Assembly (NCBI GenBank): GCA_002104905.1
Contig: MCFE01000358.1
Span: 23,647 to 87,646, forward strand
DNA length: 64,000 bases
Direction: 5' to 3'
DNA from: Basidiobolus meristosporus CBS 931.73
Lineage: Eukaryota; Fungi; Basidiobolomycota
Part shown: piece after piece, positions 1,831 through 51,776 of the stretch
How positions within the stretch are numbered: the stretch's first letter is position 1
How the letters are laid out: the number at the start of each line of letters is the position of its first letter
Notes under the pieces: model-generated
Database searches by the model: none
Told to the model about the DNA's origin: nothing
Seen by the model: only the letters and a program-made list of their open reading frames with translations
Program-made: the position numbers and the translations under genes

Positions 1831-3141
1831 ATGAGAATCAACAGTCCTTTGGGACAAGTACTCCTCGTGGGTTTCGTCTGCTTCGCATGCCCCGGTATGT
1901 TCAACGTCATCAACGGTATGGGCGCCGGTGGTCAGATGGACGATAACACAGCCAAGAACGGAAATGTCGCCCTTTACTCTTGCTTTGCCGTGTTCGGATG
2001 CCTAGGTGGCGGTTTCTACAACATTCTCGGTGGTCGTCTTTGCTTGTGCCTCGGTGGTTTGACTTACGCTTTGTACTCTGGCTCGCTCCTCTACTACAAC
2101 GAGACCAAGAAGCCCGCATTCGTGATCATTGCCAGTGCCATCCTTGGTGTTGGTGCTGGTATTCTGTGGACAGCTCAAGGCGTGGTGATGATGTCGTACC
2201 CTGCGGAAGATCAGAAGGGCCGCTGTGTCGGTCTGTTCTGGATTCTGTTCAACCTGGGTGGTGTGATGGGAGCCTTCATTCCATTCGGCCTCAACTTCCA
2301 CTCTGACAAGGGAGCAGTCAGCAACAGCACCTACCTCGCCTTCCTCGTGATCATGATTCTCGGTGCTCTCCTCGGACTCATTCTCTTGCCCCCTGGCAAG
2401 GTGATCCGTGATGATGGCAGCAGAGTAGTCGTGAAGAAGTTCACCAACATCGGCGGCGAGATCGTGGACATCCTCAAGCTCTTCACCAACAAGTACATGC
2501 TCCTGCTCACCCCGTTGTTCATCAGCTCCAACTGGTTCTACTCCTACCAGTTCGGCGCTGTGAACGGAGTGTTGTTCAACCTTCGCACCCGTTCCCTCAA
2601 CAACGCCCTGTACTGGGGATCCCAGATGCTTGGTGCCTATGGCTTGGGAGCCTTCCTCGACAACCCTCGCTTCGGTCGTCGTGCCAGAGCTGTGTATGGA
2701 CTGGCGATTGTTGGAGCGATCTTCTCGGCCACCTGGGCCGGAGGACTTGCCCTTCAGCTCCAATACACTCGTGAGGATCACCCCTCGAACATCGACTTCA
2801 TCGACCACCCCAGCGAGTTCTGGCCCAAGTTCATCCTGTACATCTTCTATGGCATGTGTGATGCCATGTTGCAAACCTATGCCTACTGGGTCATGGGAGC
2901 CTTGTCGAACGACTCATCAGTGCTTGCTCGCTATGCTGGCTACTACAAGGGCATCCAATCAGCCGGAGCCGCCATTGCGTGGAGAATCGATGCGGTCGGC
3001 ACTGCCTTCCTCACCCAGCTGATCATCAACTGGGGACTGTTCACTCTGTCTCTTCCATTCACCTACTTTGTAGCACGTGAAGTCAAGGAGACCTGTAACG
3101 ATGGCGCCGAGGAGAAGGGTGAGGTAGCTGACAAAGAGTAA
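1831..3141 (+). CDS. UNC-93-like/DUF895 MFS transporter, type A copy 1 (436 aa; Ngt1/NOPE1-like)
   Basis: Intact intronless ORF with about 12 hydrophobic segments. N-terminal signature QVLLVGFVCFACPGMFNVINGMGAGG and LWTAQG..MSYP motif. TATATAAG at 1764. Confidence 0.92.
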   Translation: MRINSPLGQVLLVGFVCFACPGMFNVINGMGAGGQMDDNTAKNGNVALYSCFAVFGCLGGGFYNILGGRLCLCLGGLTYALYSGSLLYYNETKKPAFVIIASAILGVGAGILWTAQGVVMMSYPAEDQKGRCVGLFWILFNLGGVMGAFIPFGLNFHSDKGAVSNSTYLAFLVIMILGALLGLILLPPGKVIRDDGSRVVVKKFTNIGGEIVDILKLFTNKYMLLLTPLFISSNWFYSYQFGAVNGVLFNLRTRSLNNALYWGSQMLGAYGLGAFLDNPRFGRRARAVYGLAIVGAIFSATWAGGLALQLQYTREDHPSNIDFIDHPSEFWPKFILYIFYGMCDAMLQTYAYWVMGALSNDSSVLARYAGYYKGIQSAGAAIAWRIDAVGTAFLTQLIINWGLFTLSLPFTYFVAREVKETCNDGAEEKGEVADKE

Positions 3142-3759
3142 ACTTATACCCGAACACTGTACAGATCCTATTTTGCAAATATCACTACCTAGCATTACCA
3201 CATTACAAACAATACGAAATTTTAAAATAAATGATCTCATAACCATCACTTTCGTTACCAGAACATTAGCCTATTTGCTGATGGGCTTAATCAACTGATT
3301 TTACCCTGCGTTTTACTTGTAAATCTTCACCATCTGCATTACCGTATTTCTGCTGTGTCTATGCTTTGGTGGACATTGGTGGGTGCTCTAGAGCTAGAGG
3401 GGAATAGTAAGCTGCCTTGGATGAAAAGTCCGCATGAATATCGCCTCATTTGGAGGGTGCTACCGTTTTTGGGAGATCCCTAGGGATTGAAAATCGCTTC
3501 GGATCCACACATCAATATGTATATGTCTATAATAGAGATTGACAGGTCATGGGTGATCAACGTCGCGTTTCGATGGAGCATGATCCCCCAATCCTGGAAA
3601 ACCCATTTCACGTCATACAGAAGTCCGTGGCGCCCAATTTGCTACATGTTCTGGCGAACAGAACCACTCTGTGACATAGAAATATGGTCAAATTGTGGTG
3701 TTTTTAAAGGGGCAAAATGCTGGTCAACAGTAATCTACTTGTTAAAGGTAAAAGTGGTC

Positions 3760-3824: not shown

Positions 3825-3891
3825 ATCAACATAAAGTCGTGCATGATAGCCAACCTTTACTACTACCAATACTACTAGTTACAACTATACA

Positions 3892-5942: not shown

Positions 5943-7255
5943 ATGAGAATTAACAGTCCTTTGGGACAAGTACTCCTCGTGGGTTTTGTCTGCTTCGCAT
6001 GCCCCGGCATGTTCAACGTCATCAACGGTATGGGCGCCGGTGGTCAGATGGACGATAACACAGCCAAGAACGGAAATGTCGCCCTTTACTCTTGCTTTGC
6101 CGTATTCGGATGCCTAGGTGGTGGTTTCTACAACATTCTCGGTGGTCGTCTTTGCTTGTGCCTCGGTGGTTTGACTTACGCTTTGTACTCTGGCTCGCTC
6201 CTCTACTACAACGAGACCAAGAAGCCGCATTCGTGATCATTGCCAGTGCCATCCTTGGTGTTGGTGCTGGTATTCTGTGGACAGCTCAGGGTGTGGTGAT
6301 GATGTCGTATCCCGCGGAAGATCAGAAGGGTCGCTGTGTCGGTCTGTTCTGGATTCTGTTCAACCTGGGTGGTGTGATGGGAGCCTTCATTCCATTCGGC
6401 CTCAACTTCCACTCTGACAAGGGAGCCGTCAGCAACAGCACCTACCTCGCCTTCCTCGTGATCATGATTCTCGGCGCTCTCCTCGGACTCATTCTCCTTG
6501 CCCCCTGGCAAGGTGATCCGCGATGATGGCAGCAGAGTAGTCGTGAAGAAGTTCACCAACATCGGTGGTGAGATCGTGGACATCCTCAAGCTCTTCACCA
6601 ACAAGTACATGCTCCTGCTCACCCCGTTGTTCATTCAGCTCCAACTGGTTCTACTCCTACCAGTTCGGCGCCGTGAACGGAGTGTTGTTCAACCTTCGCA
6701 CCCGTTCCCTCAACAACGCCCTGTACTGGGGATCTCAGATGCTTGGTGCCTATGGCTTGGGAGCCTTCCTTGACAACCCTCGCTTCGGTCGTCGTGCCAG
6801 AGCTGTGTATGGACTGGCCATTGTTGGAGCGATCTTCTCGGCCACCTGGGCCGGAGGTCTTGCCCTTCAGCTCCAATACACTCGTGAGGATCACCCCTCG
6901 AACATCGACTTCATCGACCACCCCAGTGAGTTCTGGCCCAAGTTCATCCTGTACATCTTCTATGGCATGTGTGATGCCATGTTGCAGACCTATGCCTACT
7001 GGGTCATGGGAGCCTTGTCGAACGACTCATCAGTGCTTGCTCGCTATGCTGGCTACTACAAGGGTATCCAATCAGCCGGAGCCGCCATTGCGTGGAGAAT
7101 CGATGCTGTCGGCACTGCCTTCCTCACCCAGCTGATCATCAACTGGGGACTGTTCACTCTGTCTCTTCCATTCACCTACTTCGTAGCAGCGTGAGGTCAA
7201 GGAGACCTGTAACGATGGCGCTGAAGAGAAGGGTGAAGCAGCTGACAAGGAGTAA
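5943..7255 (+). CDS. Type A copy 3; four single-base indels, probably consensus errors
   Basis: Full-length similarity (1313 nt). Indels are -1 (~6226), +1 ctccttg (~6497), +1 ttcattcagc (~6635) and +1 gtagcagcgt (~7188). TATATAAG at 5878. Confidence 0.75.
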
Positions 7256-8666: not shown

Positions 8667-8730
8667 ATTAGCATCGAGGTTTCTGTTTCATCAAACACTA
8701 AATAATACTACAACTAGTTACAACTGTACA

Positions 8731-10041
8731 ATGAGAATCAACAGTCCTTTGGGACAAGTACTCCTCGTGGGTTTTGTCTGCTTCGCATGCCCCGGCATGT
8801 TCAACGTCATCAACGGTATGGGCGCCGGTGGTCAGATGGATGATAACACAGCCAAGAACGGAAATGTCGCCCTTTACTCTTGCTTTGCCGTGTTCGGATG
8901 CCTAGGTGGCGGTTTCTACAACATTCTCGGTGGTCGTCTTTGCTTGTGCCTCGGTGGTTTGACTTACGCTTTGTACTCTGGCTCGCTCCTCTACTACAAC
9001 GAGACCAAGAAGCCCGCATTCGTGATCATTGCCAGTGCCATCCTTGGTGTTGGTGCTGGTATTCTGTGGACAGCTCAGGGTGTGGTGATGATGTCGTATC
9101 CCGCGGAAGATCAGAAGGGTCGCTGTGTCGGTCTGTTCTGGATTCTGTTCAACCTGGGTGGTGTGATGGGAGCCTTCATTCCATTCGGCCTCAACTTCCA
9201 CTCTGACAAGGGAGCCGTCAGCAACAGCACCTACCTCGCCTTCCTCGTGATCATGATTCTCGGCGCTCTCCTCGGACTCATTCTCTTGCCCCCTGGCAAG
9301 GTGATCCGCGATGATGGCAGCAGAGTAGTCGTGAAGAAGTTCACCAACATCGGCGGTGAGATCGTGGACATCCTCAAGCTCTTCACCAACAAGTACATGC
9401 TCCTGCTCACCCCGTTGTTCATTAGCTCCAACTGGTTCTACTCCTACCAGTTTGGCGCCGTGAACGGAGTGTTGTTCAACCTTCGCACCCGTTCCCTCAA
9501 CAACGCCCTTTACTGGGGATCTCAGATGCTTGGTGCCTACGGCTTGGGAGCCTTCCTCGACAACCCCCGCTTCGGTCGTCGTGCCAGAGCTGTGTATGGA
9601 CTGGCGATTGTTGGAGCGATCTTCTCGGCCACCTGGGCCGGAGGTCTTGCCCTTCAGCTCCAATACACTCGTGAGGATCACCCCTCGAACATCGACTTCA
9701 TCGACCACCCCAGCGAGTTCTGGCCCAAGTTCATCCTGTACATCTTCTATGGCATGTGTGATGCCATGTTGCAAACCTATGCCTACTGGGTCATGGGAGC
9801 CTTGTCGAACGACTCATCAGTGCTTGCTCGCTATGCTGGCTACTACAAGGGCATCCAATCAGCCGGAGCCGCCATTGCCTGGAGAATCGATGCTGTTGGC
9901 ACTGCCTTCCTCACCCAGCTGATCATCAACTGGGGACTGTTCACTCTGTCTCTTCCATTCACCTACTTCGTAGCGCGTGAGGTCAAGGAGACCTGTAACG
10001 ATGGCGCTGAAGAGAAGGGTGAGGTAGCAGACAAAGAGTAA
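8731..10041 (+). CDS. Type A copy 4 (436 aa, intact)
   Basis: Protein identical to copy 1. Start placed at 8731 because the ORF-track ATG at 8650 lies upstream of the TATA box. Confidence 0.92.
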   Translation: MRINSPLGQVLLVGFVCFACPGMFNVINGMGAGGQMDDNTAKNGNVALYSCFAVFGCLGGGFYNILGGRLCLCLGGLTYALYSGSLLYYNETKKPAFVIIASAILGVGAGILWTAQGVVMMSYPAEDQKGRCVGLFWILFNLGGVMGAFIPFGLNFHSDKGAVSNSTYLAFLVIMILGALLGLILLPPGKVIRDDGSRVVVKKFTNIGGEIVDILKLFTNKYMLLLTPLFISSNWFYSYQFGAVNGVLFNLRTRSLNNALYWGSQMLGAYGLGAFLDNPRFGRRARAVYGLAIVGAIFSATWAGGLALQLQYTREDHPSNIDFIDHPSEFWPKFILYIFYGMCDAMLQTYAYWVMGALSNDSSVLARYAGYYKGIQSAGAAIAWRIDAVGTAFLTQLIINWGLFTLSLPFTYFVAREVKETCNDGAEEKGEVADKE

Positions 10042-10798: not shown

Positions 10799-12109
10799 AT
10801 GAGAATCAACAGTCCTTTGGGACAAGTACTCCTCGTGGGTTTTGTCTGCTTCGCATGCCCCGGCATGTTCAACGTCATCAACGGTATGGGCGCCGGTGGA
10901 CAGATGGACGATAACACAGCCAAGAACGGAAATGTCGCCCTTTACTCTTGCTTTGCCGTGTTCGGATGCCTAGGTGGTGGTTTCTACAACATTCTTGGTG
11001 GTCGTCTTTGCTTGTGCCTCGGTGGTTTGACTTACGCTTTGTACTCTGGCTCGCTCCTCTACTACAACGAGACCAAGAAGCCGCATTCGTGATCATTGCC
11101 AGTGCCATCCTTGGTGTTGGTGCTGGTATTCTGTGGACAGCTCAGGGTGTGGTGATGATGTCGTATCCCGCGGAAGATCAGAAGGGTCGCTGTGTCGGTC
11201 TGTTCTGGATTCTGTTCAACCTGGGTGGTGTGATGGGAGCCTTCATTCCATTCGGCCTCAACTTCCACTCTGACAAGGGAGCCGTCAGCAACAGCACCTA
11301 CCTCGCCTTCCTCGTGATCATGATTCTCGGTGCTCTCCTCGGACTCATTCTCCTGCCTCCTGGCAAGGTGATCCGTGATGATGGCAGCAGAGTAGTCGTG
11401 AAGAAGTTCACCAACATCGGCGGTGAGATCGTGGACATCCTCAAGCTCTTCACCAACAAGTACATGCTCCTGCTCACCCCATTGTTCATCAGCTCCAACT
11501 GGTTCTACTCATACCAGTTCGGCGCTGTGAACGGAGTGTTGTTCAACCTTCGCACCCGTTCCCTCAACAACGCCCTCTACTGGGGATCTCAGATGCTTGG
11601 TGCCTACGGCTTGGGAGCCTTCCTCGACAACCCTCGCTTCGGTCGTCGTGCCAGAGCTGTGTATGGACTGGCCATTGTTGGAGCGATCTTCTCGGCCACC
11701 TGGGCCGGAGGACTTGCCCTTCAGCTCCAATACACTCGTGAGGATCACCCCTCGAACATCGACTTCATCGACCACCCCAGCGAGTTCTGGCCCAAGTTCA
11801 TCCTGTACATCTTCTATGGCATGTGTGATGCCATGTTGCAGACCTATGCTTACTGGGTCATGGGAGCCTTGTCGAACGACTCGTCAGTGCTTGCTCGCTA
11901 TGCTGGCTACTACAAGGGCATCCAATCAGCCGGAGCTGCCATTGCGTGGAGAATCGATGCGGTCGGCACTGCCTTCCTTACCCAGCTGATCATCAACTGG
12001 GGGACTGTTCACTCTGTCTCTTCCATTCACCTACTTTGTAGCGCGCGAGGTCAAGGAGACCTGCAACGATGGCGCCGAAGAGAAGGGCGAGGTAGCAGAC
12101 AAAGAGTAA
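10799..12109 (+). CDS. Type A copy 5; -1 and +1 indels, probably consensus errors
   Basis: 1311 nt from ATG to TAA. Indels are -1 at aagaagccgca (~11082) and +1 G in a G-run (~12001). TATATAAG at 10723. Confidence 0.75.
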
Positions 12110-13396
12110 ACCCAAACCGTAGCATTGTACAGAATTCAATCAATATTCCGCACTAAATATCATTACTATAAGCGCATCATAGCATTATCTTTGAGTTCAA
12201 ATTTAATATTGAATAAATCACCCTGTAAACGTACTTAGTTCAATGTTGATACGGATTTTTCTCCCCAAAGTACACATGCAACCCGCTACTAGTTCTCAAG
12301 TGTGTTGGCGACAATTATATTACTCTCGCATGTCAGTCTTTCTGAGCACATCATTCCTTATATTATCACAAGAAGTAGGGTTCATGTCTAATTTGCAGTG
12401 AGTTCCGGTAAGTGGGTTACAATCATGAAAGGGTTGGTAACATGGGTAATAGTTTGGGCTGTATAGCGGCCAGCGGCGTTTAATTTATGATCGGTTTAAG
12501 TTTGCAGATCGTTGTGATAAGTCTCTTGATGCCTAACATGTTGGTGATGTACAGGAAGTTGAGAATATCTAGTAGTGAATATGATTGCTTTACTACTATT
12601 GATTGTTCTATTGTTACGAATTCACAATCGGCGGCTGAAGAAGGCAAGTATAGCCATTCGTCTTCATGGGTAGTAGATGTGCCATCATTATTATTCAGCA
12701 TTAATCGATATCATAGTCTTCTGTGTTTAATTGGCAGCGCTTCCGGTACTGGAAGTCTGTTGTGTTATGCTTGGCCTTTACTTCGTCGGAGGTTTACTTT
12801 ATAACTTACTAATGCAACAAACAACAGCGTGATGAGCTGTGGATACTCTAGTGTTCTAACATAACAAACACATCGTCTGCGGCTTCTACACTGCCATGCT
12901 AACTATCAATACCTGAATAAGCATACGAGTTTTGTACACAATTTCCAATACTCTCGCTGACTTGACTGCTTATTACAACGATTAACAGGTGGCTCCAGCA
13001 GCCAATTCCCCCGAAACGGGAGCCGTTAGTACCATCCTACACGTTCAGCCGATCTTTAGTTGAGGACTCTTCCCTACAGCTTTACCGATAACTACCGTCG
13101 TAACTTTCAGGTAGAAGGAAGCTTATACCCGTTCCATCAATAAGGAAGAAGCATGCAATGACCGAGCGTAGTTTCAGGACAAATCCGTCAACCGTGTTTT
13201 TACACTACAATAGTCACCCATTGACATATCTATGCTACTCGTACATAGTGAGTAAATACTACTGCTTACACGACCATCGCACTTACTCCGCATAGATTTG
13301 CTGAAGAGAAAGTTGGGCGGTTCTCGGTTCTGATCATCTGAGGCAAAAATTTATCGAATGTGGGGTGTATTTAGATGTAGAAAAAGTAACTATCGA

Positions 13397-18359: not shown

Positions 18360-18461
18360 GAAGATAGCACTGCAGAGAACCGAATCGGTGGCCTTCACTC
18401 ATGCTTTGCCTCATTCACAGGTTTAGGCTGTGATTTCTACAACGTGCTAGATGGTTTCCTG
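18360..18461 (+). pseudogene. Highly decayed relic of the N-terminal part of a transporter copy
   Basis: Translates EDSTAENRIGGLHSCFASFTGLGCDFYNVLDGFL, colinear with DDNTAKNGNVALYSCFAVFGCLGGGFYNILGGRL. Confidence 0.7.
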
Positions 18462-29378: not shown

Positions 29379-29546
29379 AAGGCTGGCATACCAAGGGACC
29401 ATCAGGAACTGAAGGCCAGGAAGAATGCTCATAACTTGCTCCATCAGCATTATCATGGATTCAAACAAGCAAACATATTATGGGTTAGCATTAGTATGGT
29501 TACAAAGTATCTCAAGAATTGCATAAACTATCAGAGGCAGAAGTGC

Positions 29547-34521: not shown

Positions 34522-34536
34522 ATGGTTCCAAATTTG

Positions 34537-36400: not shown

Positions 36401-39400
36401 AGATACCACTTTTGCATTCAAGAAATAATCAAGTGAAAGCCATATAATCCACTTGTTTTCCCAATCAATTCTAATATGTGCAAGATTCTTACAGCAAGTA
36501 CAAGGGTGCTATAGTCAAAGACCAGCAGGGCCAAAAGCTCCAAACTAGCAGCAAAGAGACATCAGGTAGCTGGAAGAGTGCTAACAAGAGACATGCAAGT
36601 AGAAACAGATGCACAAGTGCAATAATTACCAAGGGAAAAGTATAGTTCCAGTTAACAGGTACTCAGTCACAGTAGCACTGAAGGACCTGCCAAAGATCAA
36701 AACCAGCAGCTTCCTCAGGATCCAGGCACAACCAGGGCTGAGAGCACAAAGGAAGTGGCAAAGAAACTACAGGTTGCAGTAAGAGTGCTGGTAAGGGATA
36801 AGCTGGCTGAAATAGATGCATCAGTTCAGCATTTAGCATGGAGAAAACATGGTACAATACAAGAGGCACTTAGAAAAAAGAATTGTGAAAGACCTGGCAG
36901 TGATAAAGGTATAATGAGATGGAAAGGAGTATACTCAAGCAATAGACAGGGAAGGGTGAGAAAAAAGCTGCAGTTCTCACCCATTAATGCTGTCACCTCA
37001 GAGCAAGCTAAGTCCTATAATAGCCAAGAAGTACTGATAAGACCACACTTGCTTACTCAAGAGTTAAAAGCCCAGCAAATTGAGCTACATTCTGGTGAGG
37101 TGGATGGACTGGAAATTGGAAACCAAGATTTTCTGAGATAAGAGTACCAATATACTAACTACAAAGGCAGAATGCCCCATTTATCTGGGGAGACAAGCAA
37201 GAAGCCATGCAATAACTGAAAGAGGCCTTTCAATCCCCACATATTCTAAGACCTCTTGACTATCAAGACATTTAATGCCCACATATGTTAGCAGTGAATG
37301 CAAACCCTATAGGAGCTTGAGTGTTGCTTGGCTAGGATGACTAAGATGACAACTGTAGTCCCTGCAGATATGAGAGCAGCCTATGCCCTCCTGGAGAGCA
37401 AAGGTACTCTTAAGCTGGGAGAGCACTACTAGGAGCTATTAAAATGATGAGGAAGCTGAAGTCATAACTCCGCATAACACATTTCATCCCAGAGACAGAG
37501 GCTGAGCCACCTATAGGATTGATTAACAGCCCTGACCTACTTGGTGATGCCACAAACCAATGGATGACATGGCTTTAGAATGGAAATCTAATATTAAGAC
37601 TAAAGACCTAATACCTACTTGCATACAGCAACATGAGCATCATGATTTAAATGTTAACAGAGCTGCTGAACAACCTGAGGATATGCAACTGTAGCACAAA
37701 GCACCTTTTGATAAGCTGCATTCTACAATACCCAGGCCACATTCTCCAGGAGATCCAGTATTGCTCTATGATTCCACCTCAGACAAGCAATAGAGTTGGA
37801 AGTTGGACAACAAACAGACTGGCTCATACTGCATTTCCAATTGCCTTGAAAATGAAAGTCAATACATATATAAGCTTGACAGCACCCAACTTAGAGCACC
37901 AGCTACAGGTAGCCAACTCAATGTACTCAGGCATATGTGACACAATTTCCCCTTTTGTTAGGCTCACTTTCATACAAATACTACCATAAATTTAAATTGA
38001 GTTGTCTGGTTCCTAACCAAACCCAACCACTGACAGCAGTAGAAGAACAGTTGAACAACTGCTTGTATTGATATTCAGTGCAACAAGCTGGCTAAATCCC
38101 AAAAAGGTAATACTGACGTTGAATATGCTGGTGGTTGTATTGCAGACTCCTCAGGCTCTCAGGCAATTAGGTCATTGAGAATCTTGGCAGAGCCACAAGC
38201 TGACCATAATGCCCAGGGATATGGGAGTGCAGCATCTCTGCATCAAAGAAGAGACTTAAGTATCTCAATGTCACAGACAAGAATTGGGCCATTTCCCAAA
38301 GGTTAGAGCAGTGATGCAGCATACAGTCCTTGAAGCACAACAACTGTGCCCAAAGATGATGCTGACAGAAAATATATCTCATCTTTAGAGGGAGAGACTG
38401 TGATATATATACCTCAGCCTAAAAATCAACAGATATCAAGGATCCATGAAGCCATTAGGTGTAATGATGAAGACTAGGCTAATATTCAGGTGGCCTCAAG
38501 ATGTCTAGCATGCCATCACCTCAAGGCTGGCATACCCTTGGACCATCAGGAACTCAAGGCCAGACAAAACGCTCATGGCCTGTTCCATGGGCATTATCCT
38601 ATATTCAAGCAGGTAAGCAGATTCTGAACCAGCATTGGTATGCTTAGAGAATACTTCCAGAGTAGCAGAAGCTGTCAAAGACAAAGGTACAAGGGTGCCA
38701 TAGCTAAAAGTAAGAAGCCTTGTGAGGGACCCATCACATACTGGGCAGAAATCTCTAAACAAGCAGCAAAGAAAGGTCAGGTTGTCAAAACAACCTCAGT
38801 AAGACACAAGCAGGTTGAGATGGATGCACCAGCTTGGCATTTATTAGGGAAGAGTACAGGACATTACAAAAAGCACCCAATCATAGTAGCAATGAAATGC
38901 CTTGCAGTAATAAAGATAAATTTGAATGAAAAAAGTCTACCCAAGCCAGAGATAGAGCAGGGTTTAGCAAATATCCATGTCAGAATTTGCCAGATTCTTG
39001 GCTGGTGATTGGATGGTTTTTTGCTTCTGTTTCTGCTTAAATTTTCAGTTGCATACACTGGTGGGAACAATGGGCAGCCAGCTAGCAAGTTTAGTATGAG
39101 TGTTAGTTGGACTAGTCTTTGCCTGGAAAGGATGTCTGATTGTTAGCTGTAAGGCTGGTGACAAGGATTTTGAAAGTTATTATTTTTGAGAAGATTGGAA
39201 TTCAGCTGAACATATAATTGTGTAGTGTTGGAATTTTGTTGATGTCTTTTGGGAAAAGCACCAAACTCTTACATTGAAAAAGACCATACCACTTAGCCCT
39301 ATAAAAGTCTCAAGCCTGGAATCTATTGATAATCTGCTGGTATTTTGCTGGTACTCTGATGGTATTTTGATGATATTTAGATAATTTTTTTACCTCAATA

Positions 39401-39679
39401 TTTTTGGTATCAATTTTGGTGCAAGTAATGAATGGTCACCTATCAAATAGTGTATGGATGGTAGTAGGTCTGATTATCTTTGGGGAATCCATCTACATTT
39501 TTGCCAAATAGTTGGTCATGAGGTACTGCAAGTTGCAAGTTTCTAAGGTATAAAATTTAGCCTATTTGTTCTTGTATTGTACTGATCTATTCATTAATTC
39601 TGTATTAGGAATAACTCAAAATACTCTGGAATATATACAACTTGGTAGATACCCTGTCCTCATGCCTATAATTAAGCAC

Positions 39680-40182
39680 AAAGCGATCAAGCATTATTAC
39701 ATAAATCAAAATTTAGAGAACTTCATGGTTAACTCAGCTCACTGTTCTTCTAGTGAAATGACTGCAGATATATTCACAAAACCATTGGCTTGCAGCAAAC
39801 TGGAACATCAAATATTCCATATTGAAGTAGTTGATAATAGTGTAAAAATCTGTAATTCCACTAAATTTGCACCTAGCTTAGTCACTTAAATCATTACCTC
39901 CAGATCTTGAAGATTTCCAACCAAATTCCATGTTGGAATTTATCTGAAAAGTCTCACCAAAACATCAGGTAGCCATAACATGAAATGTCTCAAAGCTATT
40001 CAGACAGCCAAAAACCTTGCACACATGTTTGTGAAGTCTTCCTCAGAATATTTTACATGTCTATTTTGCTAGGATCATAGTAAAGTATAAATGCTAAGTA
40101 TACACTTAATAAATCACTAACCATAAGCACATAATGTGCTTGTACTCCCAATTACTTCCAATATCTCCAAAACTCTTACAAC
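39680..40182 (+). mobile_element. Degenerate copia RNase H end plus 3' LTR
   Basis: [10 protein letters not shown] motif followed by an LTR-like sequence ending ctcttacaacca. Confidence 0.55.
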
Positions 40183-40225
40183 CAATAACACTATTTAGTA
40201 GAGTGGAAGTCTTTTAAATGTAGTG

Positions 40226-40641
40226 TTGGTCTACTGGTACTGTCTGGCACTATAAGTGCTTTGTATGGGTTTTACATCAGGGCTAATATTTAAATGTAGT
40301 GCCAGTTAGCACCAGTAGACTAAGATAGCCCCATGCATTTTTGTGACATACCACAAACCTCTGCAGCTGGATTCTGAATGCCATAGGCATTAAGTACCAA
40401 ATGCATGTCTTCAGACCTTTTGCACTCTTACACAGTATGCCCAATATTGATCCCAAAAAAAAGGTTAAAAAATGGATTTTCTTTAGCACAATGGGTGAAA
40501 CACAGGAACTACTTTGCATGAAGATGTAGAGCTACTTTTCACACTCTGTGACCAAGTGTAAGTCTACTTTGCCTCTCTGGCACACTAAGGCACTATTTGG
40601 CATTCATGGCTCAGTGTGGCACTATCCAATAGAACAAGTCT
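40226..40641. mobile_element. Truncated copy of the foldback element (centre plus right arm)
   Basis: Aligns to ~28070-28481 and ends GAACAAGTCT. Confidence 0.75.
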
Positions 40642-40654
40642 GATGGGTAGATAT

Positions 40655-43600
40655 TGTTGTAAAAATTTGTAATTCCACCTAAATATTCATCTAACTTAGT
40701 CACTTAGATCATTACCCTCAAATCCTAGAGAATACTGACCAAATTCCTTGTTGGGATTTACTTAGAATATTTTCACCAAAATACCAGGTACCCAGAACAT
40801 GAAAATTCTCAATGTTGTCCAAACAGCCCCACACTTTGCCCACATGCTCTTGGAACCTTCCTTAACCTATTCTATGTGTTTGCAATGCCAAGACCAGGTA
40901 AAAGTATAAATACTACTTTTACATTCAATTAATCATTAAGTGAAAACCACATAATCTACTTGTCCTCCCAATCACTTCCAATATCTCCAGGACTCTTACA
41001 ACAGGTTATGAGCCCCAAGCTGTCAATCTCTGCAATGTCTACTACTGTTATTACTGGAATTTTTCCCTATGCTGAAAAGTTGGATGGATCTAACTACCAA
41101 GTGTGGAAGGTGAAGATGAAGATGCTGCTACAAGAAAGAGGCCTTTGGGATATTGCCATGGGAGCAGAAGCCTTGAAGTACCAGAAGAAAGAACAAAGTG
41201 CCTTTAACTACATTTGCCTTGATGTCAAGGACAAATTGCTAATTCAATGCTCAAGAGCAAAAACAGCCAAGAATACCTGGAAGGGATTAGAAGACACCTA
41301 CCAGTCATGTTCAGGTGCTAACAAAATGTATCTGAGACAAAAACTCTTTACTACAAAGATGCAGCCAGGAGAAGAAATGAAAATCTAATTAACAGAATTA
41401 CCCTGCTGGTAGATGACATGAACTCTGTGGGTGTATCAACTACGGATGAGGATGTGATAGTTACCATCCTGAATAGCCTGACAGATGAGTTTCAGGGCCT
41501 TGTATCAGCCCTAGAGTCCAGAACTGAAGATTTGACCTTAAATTACATGTATGGAAGGCTCCTGGATGAAGAATTAAGAAAATCAAGTGCCAATAAGAAG
41601 GAAGAAGAAAATGCTTTAATAAGCAATGATAACCAACAAAGGAGGTACCCAAGAACCTACAAAGGCAACAGCAACCTGTTTTGCAACTACTGCAAAAGGA
41701 AAGGACACTCATCAGACCGGTGTCTCAAAAAGAGAGATTATTAGCAAAAGAAGTCTGAATATGGAAATGCTGCAACAACTGAAGATAGACTATTCATATC
41801 TGCACTAAATATGACCACAAAAAAGGCTTCTCAGACGTAGTATATTGACTCTGGAGCTTCTCAACACTTTAAACACCAAAAAGAACTTTTTACCCAACAT
41901 CAAGAAATTCCAATTAAGAAGGTTTTCATGGGTGACAATAGAACACTTGATGCTGTGGGAGAAGGAACTATCCCAGTAAACCTTAGAAGCAGTGAAGGAA
42001 GCCATACACTGATCTTTAAAGAAGTACTCTATATACCAGAAATACCCAAGAAGCTACTCTCTGTAAGTAAGGCCACAGCAGAAGGACTCAGTTTCAGTTT
42101 TGACAATTCTGGATGTAGGATCACTGATCAAAATGGTGCCCATATTGCTTTGGGCATCAGAGATCAAAATCTATACAAGTTGACTTATATTCCATCATAT
42201 CTGGAAGCCAATATAAGTAACTTAAATGAAGAAACACAAATGCTTTGGCACAGGAGATTTGAACTCATCAATTTTGATTATTTGCATAAAATGATCAAAG
42301 ATCAGCTAATTTCCAGAGTGAAATTGATCCCCCAGCTAATTTGGAGCACTGTGAAGCCTGCATATATGGGAAACAAGCCAGACAACCGTTCAAGAGCTCT
42401 GGGTTAATCAAAACTAAGAAAAAATTAGATCTAATTCACTCAGATCTGTGTGGACCTATGCAAAATTTATCCTTAGGCAGGATGAAGTATTTAATCACTT
42501 TTATTGATGATTATACAAAATACACATGGGTCTACTTCATGGAGAGAAAGGAAGTAGCTCTGTCTAGGTTCAGGGAGTTCAAAGCCATGGTGGAGAGAGA
42601 AACTGGTGAAAAAATCAAGAAAATATGCTCTGACAATGGTGGAGAATATACCTCAAAACTCTTCATCCACTTCTGCAAAATTCATGGGATAAAGCAAGAG
42701 GCTACTGTACCATACTCCCCACAGCAAAATGGAGTAGCAGAATGTGCTAACAGATCAATAACTGATATGACAAGATCTATGATCCATGATCAAAAATTAT
42801 CCTGTGATTTTTGGGTGGAACCAGTTGCCACTGCTGTGTACCTTGAAAATAGGAGTTGTAACAGAATACTTTGTGATTCTACTCCATTTGAAGCATGGTA
42901 TGGATACAGACCAAGTGCAGATCATCTAAGAATACTTGGGTATACAGCATATGCCAAAAAACTGGCCGGAAATCAGTCAAAATTTGAGCCAAAAGTGTAA
43001 AATGCATATTCTTGGGCTACTGCAATGAGAGTAAGGCATACAGACTCTACAATACCAAAGCAAAGAAGCTTATCAAGTCCAGGGATGTGTTGTTTGATGA
43101 AAATTCAAAATTTTCACAAAATATGACATCAGATGATGACAAAAATTTGATCTCAAGTCCACCAATTGTCAGGATTGAATCAGAGCAAAACAATGAAAAT
43201 TTTTTCACTCCAGAGAACTCTACAACTGTGGTTCAGCCAGAATCAGTGCCCAGGAATTTCCTGGAAGTGATCATTCCGGTATCAAATGCCCAGAGATCCA
43301 ATTGGACAAGAAATAGCCCAAATTACTATATCAATGAGGGTACAAACTTAGCCTATGCCTATTCAGTCCATATTGATGAACCCCAGACTGTAAAAGAGGC
43401 CCTAAATAGCCCTCAGACAAAGTTTTAGAGATCTGCAATGACTGAGGAATATCAGGCCCTAATGGAAAATCAACCTTGGGACTTAGTCAAATTACCAATC
43501 ACCCAAAAATCAATTGGATGCAGATGGGTCTTCAAGACAAAATACAAGGCTAATGGTACAATTGAAAGATACAAAGCAAGACTTGTGGCCAAAGGATACT

Positions 43601-45278
43601 CTCAAACAAAAGGACTTGACTATACTGAGACCTTTGCACTGGTAGCCAAGTTTAATATTGACTATTGCAGCCAAATATAAGTTTTTTATTCATCAAATGG
43701 ATGTAAAAACTGCATTTTTGAATGGAGAACTTGATGAGGATGTGTATATGGACCAGCCTGATGGGTTTGTTGACCAAGATAACCCCCATTTGGTCTGCAA
43801 GCTTAAAAAGTCAGTATATGGTCTCAATCAATCACTGAGAGCCTGGAATTGGAAGATAGATTCTTATCTGGAATCTTTGAGTTTCAATAGGAGTAATGCC
43901 AACTATAGTATATACTATAAGCCAGATAGAGCAAATACAGTTCTATTAGCTCTATATGTGGATGATCTTATTATAGCTGCCAATAATTTAGAAACATTGG
44001 AAGAGACTAAATCCAGCCTATCTAAGGAGTTCAAGATGTCCAATCTAGGAGGGCTTAATTACTACTTAGGGATTAAGTTCTCCATAGACAGAAGTACCCA
44101 GACTATCACCCTAAGCCAATCCAAGTATATTCAAGATATACCAAAGAAGTACCAAATGGAAGACTGTAAACCGGCAGCTACCCCAATGGAGACAAACCTT
44201 GACTTGGTCAAAACTCAACCAAGTCAAGAGAGCTTGGTGCCATCTGAAAGCCCTGACTTTCCTTATCAATCTATGGCCAGCAGTGTGATGTATATCATGC
44301 TTGGAACACGTCCAGATATCTCATATTCAGTGGGAATTGTCAGCCAACATAATCAGAACTATGGATCTGATCATATTGCAGCAGTTAAGTGGATTTTTAG
44401 ATACCTAAAAGGAACTGCTGATATCTGCTTAAGATACACTTATAAGGATTCAGAGCAGGATCCTGTGGGATACTCTGATGCTGATTGGGGACAAAATTTA
44501 GAAGACAGAAGATCCACCACAGGATACACCTTTCTTTACTGTAAAGGAGCAATTTCATGGAATTCAGGAAAGCAACCAACTGTAGCACTTTCTACCACAG
44601 AGGCAGAGTACATGGCAGCCTGTGAAGCTACAAAAGAAGCAATGTGGCTAAGAAAGCTTTTCACAGATTTAGGCCTATGTCAAAAAACGCCTATTTCTTT
44701 ATTTCAAGATAATCAAGGATGTATACAATTAGGTAGAAATCCAACTTTTCATGCTAGAACCAAGCACATAGATATTAGACATCATTTCATACGTGAAGCT
44801 ATAGAGAATAACTTAGTTAGCTTAGTTTACTGTCCTACAGATGAAATGATTGCAGACATATTTACCAAACCATTAGCTAGAGACAAGTTTGAATATCTTA
44901 GGTCAAAATTAGGACTAGTCAGTATGAGCATTTAGCTGAGTGGGAGTGTTGTAAAAATTTGTAATTCCACCTAAATGTTCACCTAACTTAGTCACTTAGA
45001 TCATTACCCTCAAATCCTAGAGAATACTGACCAAATTCCTTGTTGGGATTTACTTAGAATATTTACCCAGCACATGAAAATTAGATAAGTTGTCCAAACA
45101 GCCCCAAAATTTGCACACATGTTCTTGGTACCTTCCTTAACCTATTCTATGTGTTTGCAATGCCAAGACCAGGTAAAAGTATAAATACTACTTTTACATT
45201 CAATAAATCATTAAGTGAAAACCACATAATCTACTTGTCCTCCCAATCACTTCCAATATCTCCAAGACTCTTACAACA
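40655..45278 (+). mobile_element. Full-length Ty1/copia retrotransposon A (4.6 kb, inactivated)
   Basis: LTRs 40655-41003 and 44947-45278 (TGTTGTAA...TTACAACA), TSD GATAT on both sides, PBS GGTTATGAGCCC 41004-41015, PPT GAGTGGGAG. Domain order is gag (CCHC), protease (YIDSGAS), integrase, RT (YVDD), RNase H; the ORF is broken by several stops and frameshifts. Confidence 0.95.
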
Positions 45279-46974
45279 GATATAATCCTGCATGATAACT
45301 AGCCTCCGCTCAAGCAGTATATTGATGAAAGATCTACACACAGTCTTGGCATCCATATGAGGGCTTGCTCAGAAATGAATCTGCACAATACACCATGGGA
45401 AATGATGTATGAGTGTCATTGTTACATTTCTGGGAAGTTCTCACGGCAGGATTTTTGAGTGCCAGATCATGAGATTCGCCAAATCTAGATCCTGATTGCC
45501 AGACCTGGAGTACACCCCGCAAAATAGATAGGTTAAAGCCTATACTCTCACTGGATGCAGTCCATTCTGCAATAGAAATCCCTAACCCGCAACAATAATA
45601 TTACTACACCGATTGAATCAAGATGTAATCATCGTCAACGCCAAATTAAGGACATGCCCATAACGGGAAGAAAAACTCAGCAATACAAACAGGCATCGGT
45701 CACTGAATAAGAACTTGAGCAACTTTGTTAACTGTGAGTATCTTATAGGAACATGGGGACTCATATATGCAACTGAGTGGGATGTCCAGTCGTGTCGTAC
45801 CGATCCTAAAACCAATGAGCTGAGTTTGAACGTAATGCCAACGTTGTAATCGACTCCAGGTGCACTGTGGCGCACGTAGGTCCATACATTTCCCCAATGC
45901 TGAGGACTAGCCACTGTCGAAATGACCAAGAATAAGAATGATGGAATTGGCAACTCCAACTGGTCTGGAATTAAATGCGTAAACTCGTGGTTGCTGCTGT
46001 CACGAAAATTCCCCTCTCTACGCGATACCGATTTACATCGAGAATTCAAAGCGGCTGGAAACCATGTACTCTACACTGACGTATTCAAGAACCTTGCTGA
46101 CACTGCCCGTGTATGGTGATCGACTCATTCTTGCTGATTTCGGAATATTGTTGTGTTGAATCGTGTTACTCCATTGACCCATCGACTTCAACCGTAACCT
46201 CCACAGCTGGTGCATGAATGAACCAACGGGTCGAATAACAACACTTCATTCAGCAGTCCAACTGCGTATACTTCCATCCGTCACTCTGTGTTGGAGATCT
46301 AAAGATACTTCGAGATCACATAGGCAAAAGGTAACTGAGGCTGATTTCTACTGAAACCTTTTCGAGCCATTCTTGATCGGTTACATTACGGGTCCGATTT
46401 ATTCACAAATCCTTCCTAATTCGAAAAGCCACTTGGGCAAAAATGGTAGCTGCACGTACCCTATTGCTCATGTCTCAGAAGTGACGTCCATATTAAATCG
46501 GCCGATTCTGGGATTCCCAGGATATGGCGCGCGTTCTGGTTAATTAAAATCTTCCATGAAATTTTGTTCCCCATATTTGGCTGGAAATGCTAGAGAGAAG
46601 AGCCGTTGACACATCTGGAGCATTCGCACACTGATGATACGCAATGATTCTCCAAATAATCACTAGATAGGAATTCCTTTCAGTTGCGCCTTGTCATTAA
46701 GCCTATTCCAGTAAATAGCCTCCTAACTGGGATCGAAATTGGTCCATAGCCTTGTATTCTGGTATGGTGCGCTGATGGCCAGTCGAAAGTGTCACAACTA
46801 CCTATGTAAAGGAAAATAAGTTGAGCAGTGGAGTGGGTGGAGCGAGTGGAGTAGATGGTTAGCGTCTCTTGCCTCAGTAGAGCCGTAAAGATCATGAGGT
46901 GCTCAAAGTATATAAGAGCAGGTTGACTCGGAAGCTGACTTCAGTAATCTACTTCGAATAGCTACAACTATACA

Positions 46975-48276
46975 ATGAGAATCAACAGTCCCTTAGGACA
47001 AGTACTCCTGGTGGGTTTTGTCTGCTTCTGCTGCCCCGGTATGTACAATGTCATCAACGGCATGGGTGCCGGTGGTCAGATCGATGATAACACCGCCAAG
47101 AACGGAAACGTCGCGCTTTACTCCTGCTTCGCTGTGTTCGGGTGCTTGGGTGGCGGTTTCTACAACATCCTCGGTGGTCGTCTGTGCTTGTGCCTCGGTG
47201 GTTTGACTTACGCTTTGTACTCTGGCTCTCTCCTCTACTACAACGCCACCGGTAAGCCCGCTTTCGTGATCATCGCCAGTGCCATTCTTGGTATTGGTGC
47301 TGGTATTCTGTGGACAGCTCAAGGTGTGATCATGATGTCGTACCCCGAGGAAGACCAGAAGGGGCGATGTGTCGGTCTCTTCTGGATCATCTTCAACTTG
47401 GGTGGTGTGATGGGTGCCTTCATTCCATTCGGCCTCAACTTCCACTCTGACAAGGGAGCCGTCAGCAACAGCACCTACCTAGCCTTCCTTGTGATCATGG
47501 TTCTCGGAGCCCTCCTGGGCCTTATTCTCTTGCCACCTGGCAAGGTTATTCGTGAGGATGGAAGCAAGGTTGAGGTGAAGAAGTTCACCAACATCGGTGG
47601 CGAGATCCTCGACATCCTCAAGCTTTTCACCAACAAGAACATCCTGCTGCTCACCCCGTTGTTCATCAGCTCCAACTTCTTCTACTCGTACCAGTTCGGA
47701 GCGGTGAACGGAGTGCTGTTCAACCTCCGTACCCGTTCCCTCAACAATGCCCTCTACTGGGGATCCCAGATGATCGGAGCCTACTGTCTGGGTGCCTTCC
47801 TTGACAGCCCTAGGTTCGGCCGTCGTGCCAGAGCTGTGTACGGGCTGTACATGCTCGGAGCCTTCTTCACCATCACCTGGGGTGGAGGTCTTGCTCTCCA
47901 ACTTCAGTACACCCGTGAGGACCACCCCAAGAACATCGACTTCATCGATGACCCCAGCGAATTCTGGCCCAAGTTTATTCTCTACTTCTGCTACGGTATC
48001 TGCGATGCCATGCTGCAAACCTATGCCTACTGGGTGATGGGCGCCCTCTCCAACGACGCGTCTGTTCTCGCTCGCTATGCTGGCTACTACAAGGGAATCC
48101 AGTCCGCTGGTGGTGCCATTGCCTGGAGAATCGATGCTGTCAACACTGCCTTCCTTACCCAGCTCATCATCAACTGGGCCCTCTTCACCGTCTCACTGCC
48201 ATTCACCTATGTCGTGGCACGCCAGGTCAAGGAGACCTGTCACGAGGAAGGAGCTGAGAAGGGCGAGACCTCTTAA
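46975..48276 (+). CDS. UNC-93-like MFS transporter, type B copy 1 (433 aa)
   Basis: Intact intronless paralogue of type A with scattered substitutions (CCPGMYN, YNATGKP, shorter tail). TATATAAG at 46909. Confidence 0.92.
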   Translation: MRINSPLGQVLLVGFVCFCCPGMYNVINGMGAGGQIDDNTAKNGNVALYSCFAVFGCLGGGFYNILGGRLCLCLGGLTYALYSGSLLYYNATGKPAFVIIASAILGIGAGILWTAQGVIMMSYPEEDQKGRCVGLFWIIFNLGGVMGAFIPFGLNFHSDKGAVSNSTYLAFLVIMVLGALLGLILLPPGKVIREDGSKVEVKKFTNIGGEILDILKLFTNKNILLLTPLFISSNFFYSYQFGAVNGVLFNLRTRSLNNALYWGSQMIGAYCLGAFLDSPRFGRRARAVYGLYMLGAFFTITWGGGLALQLQYTREDHPKNIDFIDDPSEFWPKFILYFCYGICDAMLQTYAYWVMGALSNDASVLARYAGYYKGIQSAGGAIAWRIDAVNTAFLTQLIINWALFTVSLPFTYVVARQVKETCHEEGAEKGETS

Positions 48277-50474: not shown

Positions 50475-51776
50475 ATGAGAATCAACAGTCCCTTAGGACA
50501 AGTACTCCTGGTGGGTTTTGTCTGCTTCTGCTGCCCCGGTATGTACAATGTCATCAACGGCATGGGTGCCGGTGGTCAGATCGATGACAACACCGCCAAG
50601 AACGGAAACGTCGCGCTTTACTCCTGCTTCGCTGTGTTCGGATGCTTGGGTGGCGGTTTCTACAACATCCTCGGTGGTCGTCTGTGCTTGTGCCTCGGTG
50701 GTTTGACTTACGCTTTGTACTCTGGCTCTCTCCTCTACTACAACGCCACCGGTAAGCCCGCTTTCGTGATCATCGCCAGTGCCATTCTTGGTATTGGTGC
50801 TGGTATTCTGTGGACAGCACAAGGTGTGATCATGATGTCGTACCCCGAGGAAGACCAGAAGGGGCGATGTGTCGGTCTCTTCTGGATCATCTTCAACTTG
50901 GGTGGTGTGATGGGTGCCTTCATTCCATTCGGCCTCAACTTCCACTCTGACAAGGGAGCAGTCAGCAACAGCACCTACCTAGCCTTCCTTGTGATCATGG
51001 TTCTCGGAGCCCTCCTGGGCCTTATTCTCTTGCCACCTGGCAAGGTTATTCGTGAGGATGGAAGCAAGGTTGAGGTGAAGAAGTTCACCAACATCGGTGG
51101 CGAGATCCTCGACATCCTCAAGCTTTTCACCAACAAGAACATCCTGCTGCTCACCCCGTTGTTCATCAGCTCCAACTTCTTCTACTCGTACCAGTTCGGA
51201 GCGGTGAACGGAGTGCTGTTCAACCTCCGTACCCGTTCCCTCAACAATGCCCTCTACTGGGGATCCCAGATGATCGGAGCCTACTGTCTGGGTGCCTTCC
51301 TTGACAGCCCTAGGTTCGGCCGTCGTGCCAGAGCTGTGTACGGGCTGTACATGCTCGGAGCCTTCTTCACCATCACCTGGGGTGGAGGTCTTGCTCTCCA
51401 ACTTCAGTACACCCGTGAGGACCACCCCAAGAACATCGACTTCATCGATGACCCCAGCGAATTCTGGCCCAAGTTCATTCTCTACTTCTGCTACGGTATC
51501 TGCGATGCCATGCTGCAAACCTATGCCTACTGGGTGATGGGCGCCCTCTCCAACGACGCGTCTGTTCTCGCTCGCTATGCTGGCTACTACAAGGGAATCC
51601 AGTCTGCTGGTGGTGCCATTGCCTGGAGAATCGATGCTGTCAACACTGCTTTCCTTACCCAGCTCATCATCAACTGGGCCCTCTTCACCGTCTCACTGCC
51701 ATTCACCTATGTCGTGGCACGCCAGGTCAAGGAGACCTGTCACGAGGAAGGAGCTGAGAAGGGCGAGACCTCTTAA
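50475..51776 (+). CDS. UNC-93-like MFS transporter, type B copy 2 (433 aa)
   Basis: Protein identical to type B copy 1; located exactly 3500 bp downstream. Confidence 0.92.
   Translation: MRINSPLGQVLLVGFVCFCCPGMYNVINGMGAGGQIDDNTAKNGNVALYSCFAVFGCLGGGFYNILGGRLCLCLGGLTYALYSGSLLYYNATGKPAFVIIASAILGIGAGILWTAQGVIMMSYPEEDQKGRCVGLFWIIFNLGGVMGAFIPFGLNFHSDKGAVSNSTYLAFLVIMVLGALLGLILLPPGKVIREDGSKVEVKKFTNIGGEILDILKLFTNKNILLLTPLFISSNFFYSYQFGAVNGVLFNLRTRSLNNALYWGSQMIGAYCLGAFLDSPRFGRRARAVYGLYMLGAFFTITWGGGLALQLQYTREDHPKNIDFIDDPSEFWPKFILYFCYGICDAMLQTYAYWVMGALSNDASVLARYAGYYKGIQSAGGAIAWRIDAVNTAFLTQLIINWALFTVSLPFTYVVARQVKETCHEEGAEKGETS

Follow-up and report, generated by a model that had tools for sequence, protein, structure and literature searches.

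A tandem array of UNC-93-like permease genes, putatively of the Ngt1/NOPE1 type, in Basidiobolus meristosporus

Layout of the array

The window (the whole 64-kb stretch of DNA of Basidiobolus meristosporus CBS 931.73 that was analysed) harbors ten type A and two type B UNC-93-like MFS genes, as found by tblastn with copy 1 and by blastn. All 12 full-length copies are intronless and lie on the + strand, which bears out the count, the orientation and the gene structure given in an earlier note on this DNA. The features of the locus are as follows.

414..1217, + strand: psi0, a dead family copy (ORF 378-1244) with an in-frame deletion of residues 55-222 and a compensated frameshift stretch in its 3' part
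1831..3141, + strand: A1, intact UNC-93-like MFS gene, 436 aa
3892..5203, + strand: A2, full-length copy; indels in the assembly: -1 (alignment column 283), +1 (columns 425 and 718)
5943..7255, + strand: A3, full-length copy; indels in the assembly: -1 (alignment column 283), +1 (columns 556, 694 and 1252)
8731..10041, + strand: A4, intact; protein identical to that of A1
10799..12109, + strand: A5, full-length copy; indels in the assembly: -1 (alignment column 283), +1 (column 1207, G4 to G5)
12869..13168, + strand: old family remnant in the A5-A6 spacer; it matches residues 337-426 at 33% aa identity
13879..15189, + strand: A6, intact; A426S
16496..17807, + strand: A7, full-length copy; indel in the assembly: +1 (alignment column 721)
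18360..18749, + strand: old family remnant in the A7-A8 spacer, preserved as three pieces with 48-53% aa identity
19492..20802, + strand: A8, intact; V432A
22007..23317, + strand: A9, intact; A433T
24406..25716, + strand: A10, intact; A296V
25717..46974, no strand assigned: nested Ty1/copia debris of ~21 kb, separating the A block from the B pair
40655-41004 and 44947-45279: LTR pair, 91% identical, of an element within the copia debris
46975..48276, + strand: B1, intact, 433 aa, 89.4% aa identity to A1
50475..51776, + strand: B2, intact, 433 aa; protein identical to that of B1

The six intact A copies (A1, A4, A6 and A8-A10) encode proteins of 436 aa each with 99.8-100% identity to copy 1, in agreement with the earlier estimate of a difference of at most one residue. 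B1 and B2 differ by 7 synonymous changes. The two remnants before A6 and A8 are the two dead copies of the earlier note, and psi0, situated ahead of A1, is a third one outside the coordinates given there. In the 3' part of psi0, 15 of the 33 differences fall on codon positions 1 or 2, which speaks for relaxed constraint. Other neighbours of the array in the window, besides copia elements, are the genes for two ribosomal proteins and for a pterin dehydratase. The codon usage of the array resembles that of the neighbouring ribosomal protein genes and is unlike that of the copia elements; with Nc values of 40-43 and GC3 of 0.69-0.71, the bias that had been called strong is only partly so.

Every copy has a TATA box of its own, 61-89 nt upstream of the ATG, as well as a separate AATAAA signal, and its spacer is unique for the most part. 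For most copies the blastn similarity extends from 3 nt ahead of the ATG to the stop codon and no further; the copies do not represent a recently repeated unit. Upstream sequence is common only to A6-A9 (84-93% identity over 400-680 bp) and to the B1/B2 pair (294 bp). The copies are not retrocopies either, as the paralogues at other loci are also intronless, each copy has its own TATA promoter and poly(A) tails are absent. The stretch was found in none of the runs recorded as RNA. Run X3 covers gene parts only, together with 87 nt past the A2 stop codon, and one of its contigs extends beyond the TATA box of a B copy, so that RNA and low-coverage DNA are indistinguishable for this run.

Family assignment and putative substrate

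Both protein types score above the Pfam gathering cut-offs: A1 reaches 63.5 bits for UNC-93 (PF05978, cut-off 22.9) and 39.4 bits for MFS_1 (cut-off 33.4), and B1 reaches 62.8 and 51.5 bits, respectively. Over its full length A1 is 43% identical to Candida albicans Ngt1 (443 residues, E 7e-125), the comparator being protein P0411 from a C. albicans/C. africana cluster named N-acetylglucosamine transporter by one source. The assignment to the UNC-93-like MFS family made in the earlier note is thus confirmed, and the N-terminal motifs quoted there are present in A1 and align to Ngt1. The best non-fungal matches are the plant UNC93-like 1/2 proteins (52-53% identity over the full length, E ~1e-140). 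Together with the Rhizophagus homologue the identities to A1 span 52-54%, whereas Ngt1 and the plant proteins share 38-42%, i.e. A1 is nearer to each of them than they are to each other. NOPE1 we take to be a member of the plant UNC93-like 1/2 group, on the proteins of which the present identities were measured. Twenty representatives of the best 150 matches were looked up, and every named one is a fungal DUF895/MFS protein.

All 72 of the 72 invariant or near-invariant positions of the family are kept in both A and B. The polar residues proposed for Ngt1 by docking in a preprint (N80, W167, N195, N289, Y292, Q320 and Q435) are conserved in A1 according to the alignment; since they are conserved family-wide, they carry little information on the substrate. 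The AlphaFold model (pLDDT 90.4, pTM 0.90) predicts a 12-helix MFS fold. Sequence search of solved structures gave no match, with no UNC93B1 chain reached at E 0.01; in the fold search the best solved matches were all MFS transporters (PfHT1, FLVCR2 and sialin, probability 1.0). Such matches of the predicted fold are generic for MFS and give no pointer to the substrate.

The array does not represent a novel type of system but a known family that has undergone a large expansion specific to this lineage. In a tree without outgroup, 16 Basidiobolus paralogues group in one clade (100% support). The clade is placed among plant, Kickxellomycotina, Glomeromycotina and Dikarya Ngt1-type proteins, with an unresolved backbone and no UNC93A/MFSD11 outgroup. 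The family numbers at least about 25 genes in the genome. Further arrays of equal size were sought at three loci and rejected: the P0008 locus holds a single gene, L003 a cluster of 4 genes in mixed orientation and L002 2 genes; several other single family genes are found elsewhere.

Probably, the array consists of genuine, independently transcribed, intronless genes for 12-helix permeases of the Ngt1/NOPE1 type (DUF895, UNC-93-like), with a putative function in GlcNAc uptake. GlcNAc use was restored to a C. albicans ngt1 mutant by C. albicans Ngt1, by Histoplasma Ngt1 and Ngt2 and by maize NOPE1 (PMC3778022, PMC7151181, PMC7558947). All members assayed, whether from the Dikarya side of the tree (Ngt1/Ngt2) or from the plant side (NOPE1), support GlcNAc uptake (PMC3778022, PMC7558947). 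This, along with the closer identity of A1 to Ngt1 and to the plant proteins than of these to each other and the retention of the near-invariant positions in A and B, argues against the rival view that the array is real and its proteins carry something other than GlcNAc, for instance a different amino sugar, chitobiose, some other small metabolite or a signal for export. We regard this as possible and somewhat unlikely. In its favor, assays exist for few family members; what NOPE1 actually transports, and in which direction, is debated, a role in signal release having been proposed (PMC8644718). The large Basidiobolus clade has diverged internally, its subclades being 54-69% identical to each other, and its more than 25 paralogues may have diversified in substrate. 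Two other family loci, in two species, adjoin a BBE/FAD oxidase gene. Also consistent with another substrate is that no GlcNAc catabolic genes (HXK1/DAC1/NAG1 type) were found in the window and that Ndt80-type MSE sites show no enrichment in the 12 promoters (6 MSE cores against 6.4 expected), for which reason these sites were dropped as a mark of the GlcNAc regulon. Clustering of Ngt with GlcNAc catabolic genes or Ndt80-type sites occurs in some fungi and is not obligatory.

Integrity, selection and authenticity of the copies

As assembled, 8 of the 12 copies are intact, and four A copies (A2, A3, A5 and A7), all of full length, carry frameshifts. Most or all of these frameshifts are probably errors of the long-read assembly. 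Three observations suggest this. The private codon changes in the four copies comprise 15 synonymous and 0 nonsynonymous ones (P ~3e-10 under neutrality); the spectrum of the 8 distinct indel events is biased to insertions (7 of 8 are +1); and two of the insertions, in A2 at window position 4605 and in A3 at 7189, are present in no read contig compared. An insertion at 7408/9 in a unique spacer is likewise missing from every read contig compared, although read contigs can lose variants and the presence or absence of an indel in them is no proof. In addition, a family gene elsewhere in the assembly (L003, 15617-16928) is also read in two frames. The same evidence speaks against the opposite explanation, according to which the four copies are true, very recent pseudogenes and 8 working genes are left in an array undergoing birth-and-death erosion. 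This is a somewhat unlikely reading with some facts on its side. Copies do die in the array, as psi0 and the two old remnants demonstrate; 5 of the 7 indels in A2 and A3 are not contradicted by read contigs; and the -1 at alignment column 283, also uncontradicted, is common to A2, A3 and A5, which is odd for a random error and could have spread via conversion. If the frameshifts are assembly errors, the organism probably has 12 working genes. The twelve-copy amplification proposed in the earlier note thus stands as to the 12 full-length copies and needs qualification as to their integrity in the assembly, where the frameshifts appear to be of mostly technical origin. Together with them, the patched gene models, such as those of 380 aa and 322 aa on contig MCFE01000358.1, are probably artefacts.

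The A copies differ at 89 variable sites, 80 of which are at codon position 3. Among them dS is 0.10 and dN 0.001 (ratio 0.01); between A and B, dS is 0.62 and dN 0.063. Over all ten A copies the private changes amount to 37 synonymous and 3 nonsynonymous ones and, being own to one copy, cannot derive from other copies in the window. This pattern suggests that the coding regions are held alike by very strong purifying selection acting on every copy. In A1-A5 and A10, the flanks of which no longer align, gene conversion restricted to the coding region is a probable further contributor. The four-gamete test is failed by 653 of the 1128 informative site pairs, with a minimum of 30 events; in a PHI-type test the compatible sites showed no spatial clustering (p = 0.19), and conversion tracts are therefore not directly supported. 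The mosaic pattern of variants fits frequent conversion, as would be expected if the amplification were a neutral by-product of a duplication-prone genome, with copies converted from a few selected ones and no benefit of dosage. Such an origin appears improbable, given the excess of synonymous private changes over all ten A copies and the preservation of a TATA box and a poly(A) signal in each copy despite the diverged flanks.

The tandem array is genuine and fairly old. Its copies are separated by mostly unique spacers (A6-A9 and B1/B2 are the exceptions), and private synonymous variants are found in each of them. Each of the 30 bins has short-read contigs from the sample, and these reach across unique spacers with at least 3 different upstream junctions, and loose contig ends match the upstream sequences of other copies. 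The depth of spacer contigs is ~150-210, while that of single coding-region contigs is 500-800, i.e. several-fold higher. The coding regions are 97% identical and small errors are present in the assembly, but the differing spacers and promoters of most copies, their private variants and the read contigs largely refute the idea that the assembly has over-expanded a single gene or a few, the concern raised in the earlier note, and leave it a negligible likelihood.

Proposed role and comparison with known systems

Taken together, the ten A genes encode practically one protein and the two B genes a second isoform, so that the array would multiply production of the same protein through many distinct promoters. 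Purifying selection on each copy, along with conversion of the coding regions in A1-A5 and A10, probably keeps the coding regions alike, the frameshifts would be mostly assembly errors and 12 genes would be working. Judging from relatives only, the proteins may serve the uptake of N-acetylglucosamine or a close amino-sugar relative at the plasma membrane. Basidiobolus is found in the gut and dung of amphibians and reptiles that feed on insects, and it can also cause infections in people; an uptake amplified within a Basidiobolus-wide family expansion (~25 or more genes) would suit a chitin-rich niche. That twelve genes form one array with a dN/dS of 0.01 suggests an unusually high demand in Basidiobolus for the putative transport activity. 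A more far-reaching proposal, which we put forward tentatively, is that a normally single-copy Ngt1/NOPE1 transporter has become a Basidiobolus family of more than 25 genes, the twelve-gene core of which is held at one protein by selection and conversion and is read from different promoters for high-capacity uptake or sensing of chitin sugars under multiple conditions, as an adaptation to the guts of insect-eaters.

If this is true, it is the first concerted array described for the Ngt1/NOPE1 family; no description of an array or an expansion in this family was found in the literature. The array also offers a clean natural case for studying how coding regions stay alike while promoters diverge, and whether placing identical proteins behind different promoters is a matter of dosage or of regulation. 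In the organisms described, Ngt1-type transporters occur in one or two copies, and already the two paralogues of Histoplasma capsulatum, Ngt1 and Ngt2, which both carry GlcNAc, were called "surprising" by the authors (PMC3778022).

Histoplasma is thus comparable as a fungus with more than one Ngt-type transporter, but its two paralogues are dispersed and diverged, whereas Basidiobolus has a twelve-gene array of two near-identical isoforms. C. albicans Ngt1 (orf19.5392) has the same Pfam domains as the array proteins (UNC-93 and MFS_1) and shares with A1 the blocks PGMFN, LWxAQG..MSYP, FNLG, SNWFY.YQ and YKGIQSAGAAIAWR; it differs in being single-copy, against 12 genes in the array and ~25 or more genome-wide in Basidiobolus, and in its length of 509 aa with a 55-residue N-terminal extension. 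Plants have 1-3 NOPE1/UNC93-like 1/2 genes with introns, in contrast to the intronless genes of the array.

The closest parallel in organization is provided by the yeast ENA1-5, HXT6/7 and CUP1 arrays, which are usually read as a result of selection for dosage. They resemble the Basidiobolus array in their head-to-tail copies on the same strand and near-identical proteins, and to this extent the comparison with HXT and ENA drawn in the earlier note is apt. It fails for the repeat unit, which in Basidiobolus does not include the flanks and is not near-identical throughout. In yeast the entire unit, flanks included, has been repeated recently and the copy number varies between strains, whereas the spacers of the Basidiobolus array are mostly unrelated, dS among its A copies is 0.10 and the similarity stops at the ends of the coding region.

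Composition and authenticity of the array

A tblastn search of the window with the first 436-aa ORF retrieved ten type A (A1-A10) and two type B (B1, B2) UNC-93-like MFS genes, all intronless and on the + strand, which is the set described in an earlier note made from the sequence alone. Six A copies are intact, and the tblastn matches and alignment bear out that no more than one residue separates their proteins from A1. A2, A3, A5 and A7 are full length, each with 1-nt indels. The proteins of B1 and B2 are identical (433 aa) and share 89.4% identity with A1. Both remnants counted as dead copies in the earlier note are present, but a third dead copy, psi0, lies to the left of the region it assigned to the array. 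The array is split between A10 and B1 by copia fragments, and B2 is followed on its right by two ribosomal protein genes, a dehydratase gene and further copia elements.

Family remnants and neighbours of the array in the window
414-1217, + strand: psi0, dead family copy (tblastn)
12869-13168, + strand: short, highly diverged remnant (tblastn)
18360-18749, + strand: short, highly diverged remnant (tblastn)
25717-46974: nested Ty1/copia fragments, ~21 kb, between A10 and B1
52450-52776, + strand: exon of ribosomal protein uS11 (S14), in a compact housekeeping block (52450-54365) directly after the array
53071-53517, + strand: pterin-4a-carbinolamine dehydratase, same block
53676-54365, - strand: ribosomal protein eS8, same block

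A near-complete Ty1/copia element at 56118-61024 carries gag, integrase and RT in three successive + ORFs (56592-57158, 57523-58365 and 58480-60660). With LTR segments (56118-56332 and 60810-61024) 99% identical it looks young, and its ORF breaks may be assembly indels. An older copia element (40655-45279) lies within the 21-kb block; its LTRs (40655-41004 and 44947-45279) are 91% identical, a divergence close to the dS of the A copies.

The array is real. According to blastn with the first unit and its flanks, similarity between copies begins 3-9 nt before the ATG and stops at the stop codon, with a short downstream extension in A4 and A5 only. In the all-against-all spacer comparison, upstream sequence is common to A6-A9 (84-93% over 400-680 bp) and to B1 and B2 (294 bp, 96.6%), and the remaining spacers are unique. 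Collapsed-repeat artefacts yield no unique spacers. Each of the 30 bins of 3142-9141 is covered by independent contigs built from short reads of the same sample (runs X1 and X2). Where these contigs break off at gene starts, their loose ends carry upstream sequence of three kinds: that of A1, the A7/A8 type and that of B. An over-expansion of the assembly, considered in the earlier note, is thus contradicted by the spacers, the contigs covering them and the differing upstream junctions. Read depth was proposed there as a check; contig depth is several-fold higher in coding regions (500-800 for single exact-matching contigs, up to 1000-2400 when summed) than in spacer contigs (~150-210 by word depth); contig depth does not give copy number, and these values are no more than consistent with many copies.

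Conserved coding regions and diverged flanks

The coding regions of the ten A copies contain 89 variable sites, 80 of them at codon position 3, six at position 1 and three at position 2. Variation at the protein level is limited to five residues, four of which lie in the C-terminal tail. The Nei-Gojobori estimates are dS 0.10 and dN 0.001 (ratio 0.01) for A versus A, dS 0.62 and dN 0.063 for A versus B, and dS 0.024 and dN 0 for B1 versus B2. As an internal control for pseudogene decay, psi0 has lost residues 55-222 in frame and contains a compensated frameshift stretch, and of the 33 differences in its 3' part, 15 affect the first or second codon position. A true pseudogene at this locus therefore looks very unlike the A copies. 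Every copy has been under strong purifying selection.

The upstream divergence of A6-A9 (7-16%) is roughly as dS predicts, so these copies look like ordinary duplicates. In the flanks of A1-A5 and A10 only short motifs remain, among them the 5'UTR motif adjoining the ATG, yet dS is the same. These six copies are probably older duplicates in which gene conversion has homogenised the coding regions, its tracts stopping where homology stops. The four-gamete test is failed by 653 of 1128 informative-site pairs (minimum 30 events), but a PHI-type permutation test on the A copies revealed no spatial structure (p = 0.19); conversion among the coding regions is thus likely, short of demonstrated. The pattern of conserved coding regions with diverged flanks is instructive.

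A TATA box is found at -61 to -89 in 11 of the 12 copies, and an AATAAA signal ~80-100 nt downstream. A conserved TGTACAGAAT-like motif ~15-30 nt 3' of the stop codon is retained in the otherwise unalignable flanks of seven copies (A1, A3-A8; e.g. 3160-3172, 7277-7290); it may represent a UGUA-type regulatory element of the 3'UTR, or residual homology only. The twelve genes are transcription units in their own right, every one equipped with a core promoter and a poly(A) signal, and between them they encode two isoforms of one permease.

Frameshifts in four type A copies

Most of the frameshifts in A2, A3, A5 and A7 are rather likely to be technical. The private codon changes of these copies are 15 synonymous and none nonsynonymous, for which the neutral chance is ~3e-10 given 23% synonymous sites. 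Among the eight distinct indel events, seven insert one base (+1), and such an insertion-heavy spectrum is typical of long-read consensus error. The inserted bases at 4605 (A2) and 7189 (A3) are absent from every short-read contig covering the site, as is a 1-nt insertion in a unique spacer (7408/9), so the assembly does contain such errors. At L003, another B. meristosporus locus of the same assembly, a family gene (L003:15617-16928) is also broken into two frames by tblastn and annotated as 428 aa, probably a further indel patched by the gene model. That the frameshifts are real would agree with the -1 at alignment column 283 (CCC to CC), common to A2, A3 and A5 and not contradicted by the read contigs; five of the seven A2/A3 indels are likewise uncontradicted, and short-read contigs cannot prove the absence of a variant. 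Technical origin of most of them is nevertheless preferred, and most of the "dead" full-length copies of the array are probably alive.

In the unique spacers of 3142-9141 the read contigs show single-base mismatches to the assembly (e.g. 3611, 5828, 7657 and 7726). Some sites in 3297-3360 are split ~50:50, and X1 and X2, from one sample, conflict in a few places. These discrepancies suggest allelic differences among nuclei or haplotypes, in addition to assembly error.

Family, putative substrate and lineage-specific expansion

Both the UNC-93 and MFS_1 Pfam models score over the cut-off. The nearest relatives outside Basidiobolus are proteins of Kickxellomycotina, Dimargaritales, Zoopagales and Glomeromycotina (50-56% identity), followed by many plant "UNC93-like protein 1/2" sequences (~52%), a group to which NOPE1 presumably belongs; these plant proteins stood in for NOPE1 in the family comparison, which was made without a UNC93A or MFSD11 outgroup. 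In a full HMMER scan against 1.8 billion representatives, 368 clusters reached E <= 1e-30. Among 20 representatives examined from the best 150, all named proteins are fungal DUF895/MFS; one leads to CTG-clade yeasts and a 509-aa C. albicans/C. africana cluster, named "N-acetylglucosamine transporter" by one source. This protein is Ngt1. A1 is 43% identical to it over 443 residues (E 7e-125), with the N-terminal and LWxAQG..MSYP motifs of the earlier note aligned in register. With homologues from grasses, water lily and Rhizophagus A1 has 52-54% identity, against only 38-42% between Ngt1 and the plant proteins. Assignment to the Ngt1-type UNC-93-like MFS transporters, as first proposed from the motifs, is supported by these comparisons.

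According to reviews, a C. albicans ngt1 mutant regains the use of GlcNAc when given maize NOPE1 or either of the two Histoplasma paralogues (PMC7151181, PMC7558947, PMC3778022). Together with the identities of A1, this places the Basidiobolus proteins inside the sequence space of proven GlcNAc carriers, and by analogy the substrate would be GlcNAc or a close relative. Within the window no link to GlcNAc catabolism was found, and the array promoters are not enriched in MSE sites. Basidiobolus lives on chitin-rich material, which a GlcNAc-like substrate would fit. A confident AlphaFold model (pLDDT 90.4, pTM 0.90) built from a 42-sequence alignment has the standard MFS fold. None of the 72 positions that are invariant or nearly so in the family is among the 46 differences between A and B, which cluster in a single helix (residues 292-303) and in the C-terminal tail.

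In codon usage the array genes are similar to the ribosomal protein genes next to them (RSCU r ~0.65, GC3 0.69 versus 0.71), but the bias, called strong in the earlier note, is only moderate (Nc 43); it is compatible with good expression. The array may raise the capacity of the cell to make the transporter; alternatively, the differing promoters may spread its expression over many conditions.

In a 67-sequence tree, likewise confined to the ingroup, the 16 Basidiobolus proteins fall together in a single clade (100% SH-aLRT), within which the A and B genes of the window make up a subclade (98%) adjoining a group of B. meristosporus and B. ranarum genes. At other loci the same assembly, GCA_002104905.1, contains several single family genes besides a four-gene cluster of mixed orientation (L003) and a pair at L002 that adjoins a BBE/FAD oxidase gene. 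On a B. ranarum contig (L004) a family gene is also near an FAD-oxidase gene, and the two arrangements look syntenic. The two sites are L002:1993-3485 (oxidase with FAD_binding_4 and BBE) and L004:7540-8096 (oxidase with FAD_binding_4). The BBE-like FAD oxidase family includes chito-oligosaccharide oxidases, and a functional link between transporter paralogue and oxidase is possible. Window and other loci together hold roughly 25 or more family genes. In the array a known transporter family has undergone a striking, lineage-specific expansion; it does not represent a new kind of system.
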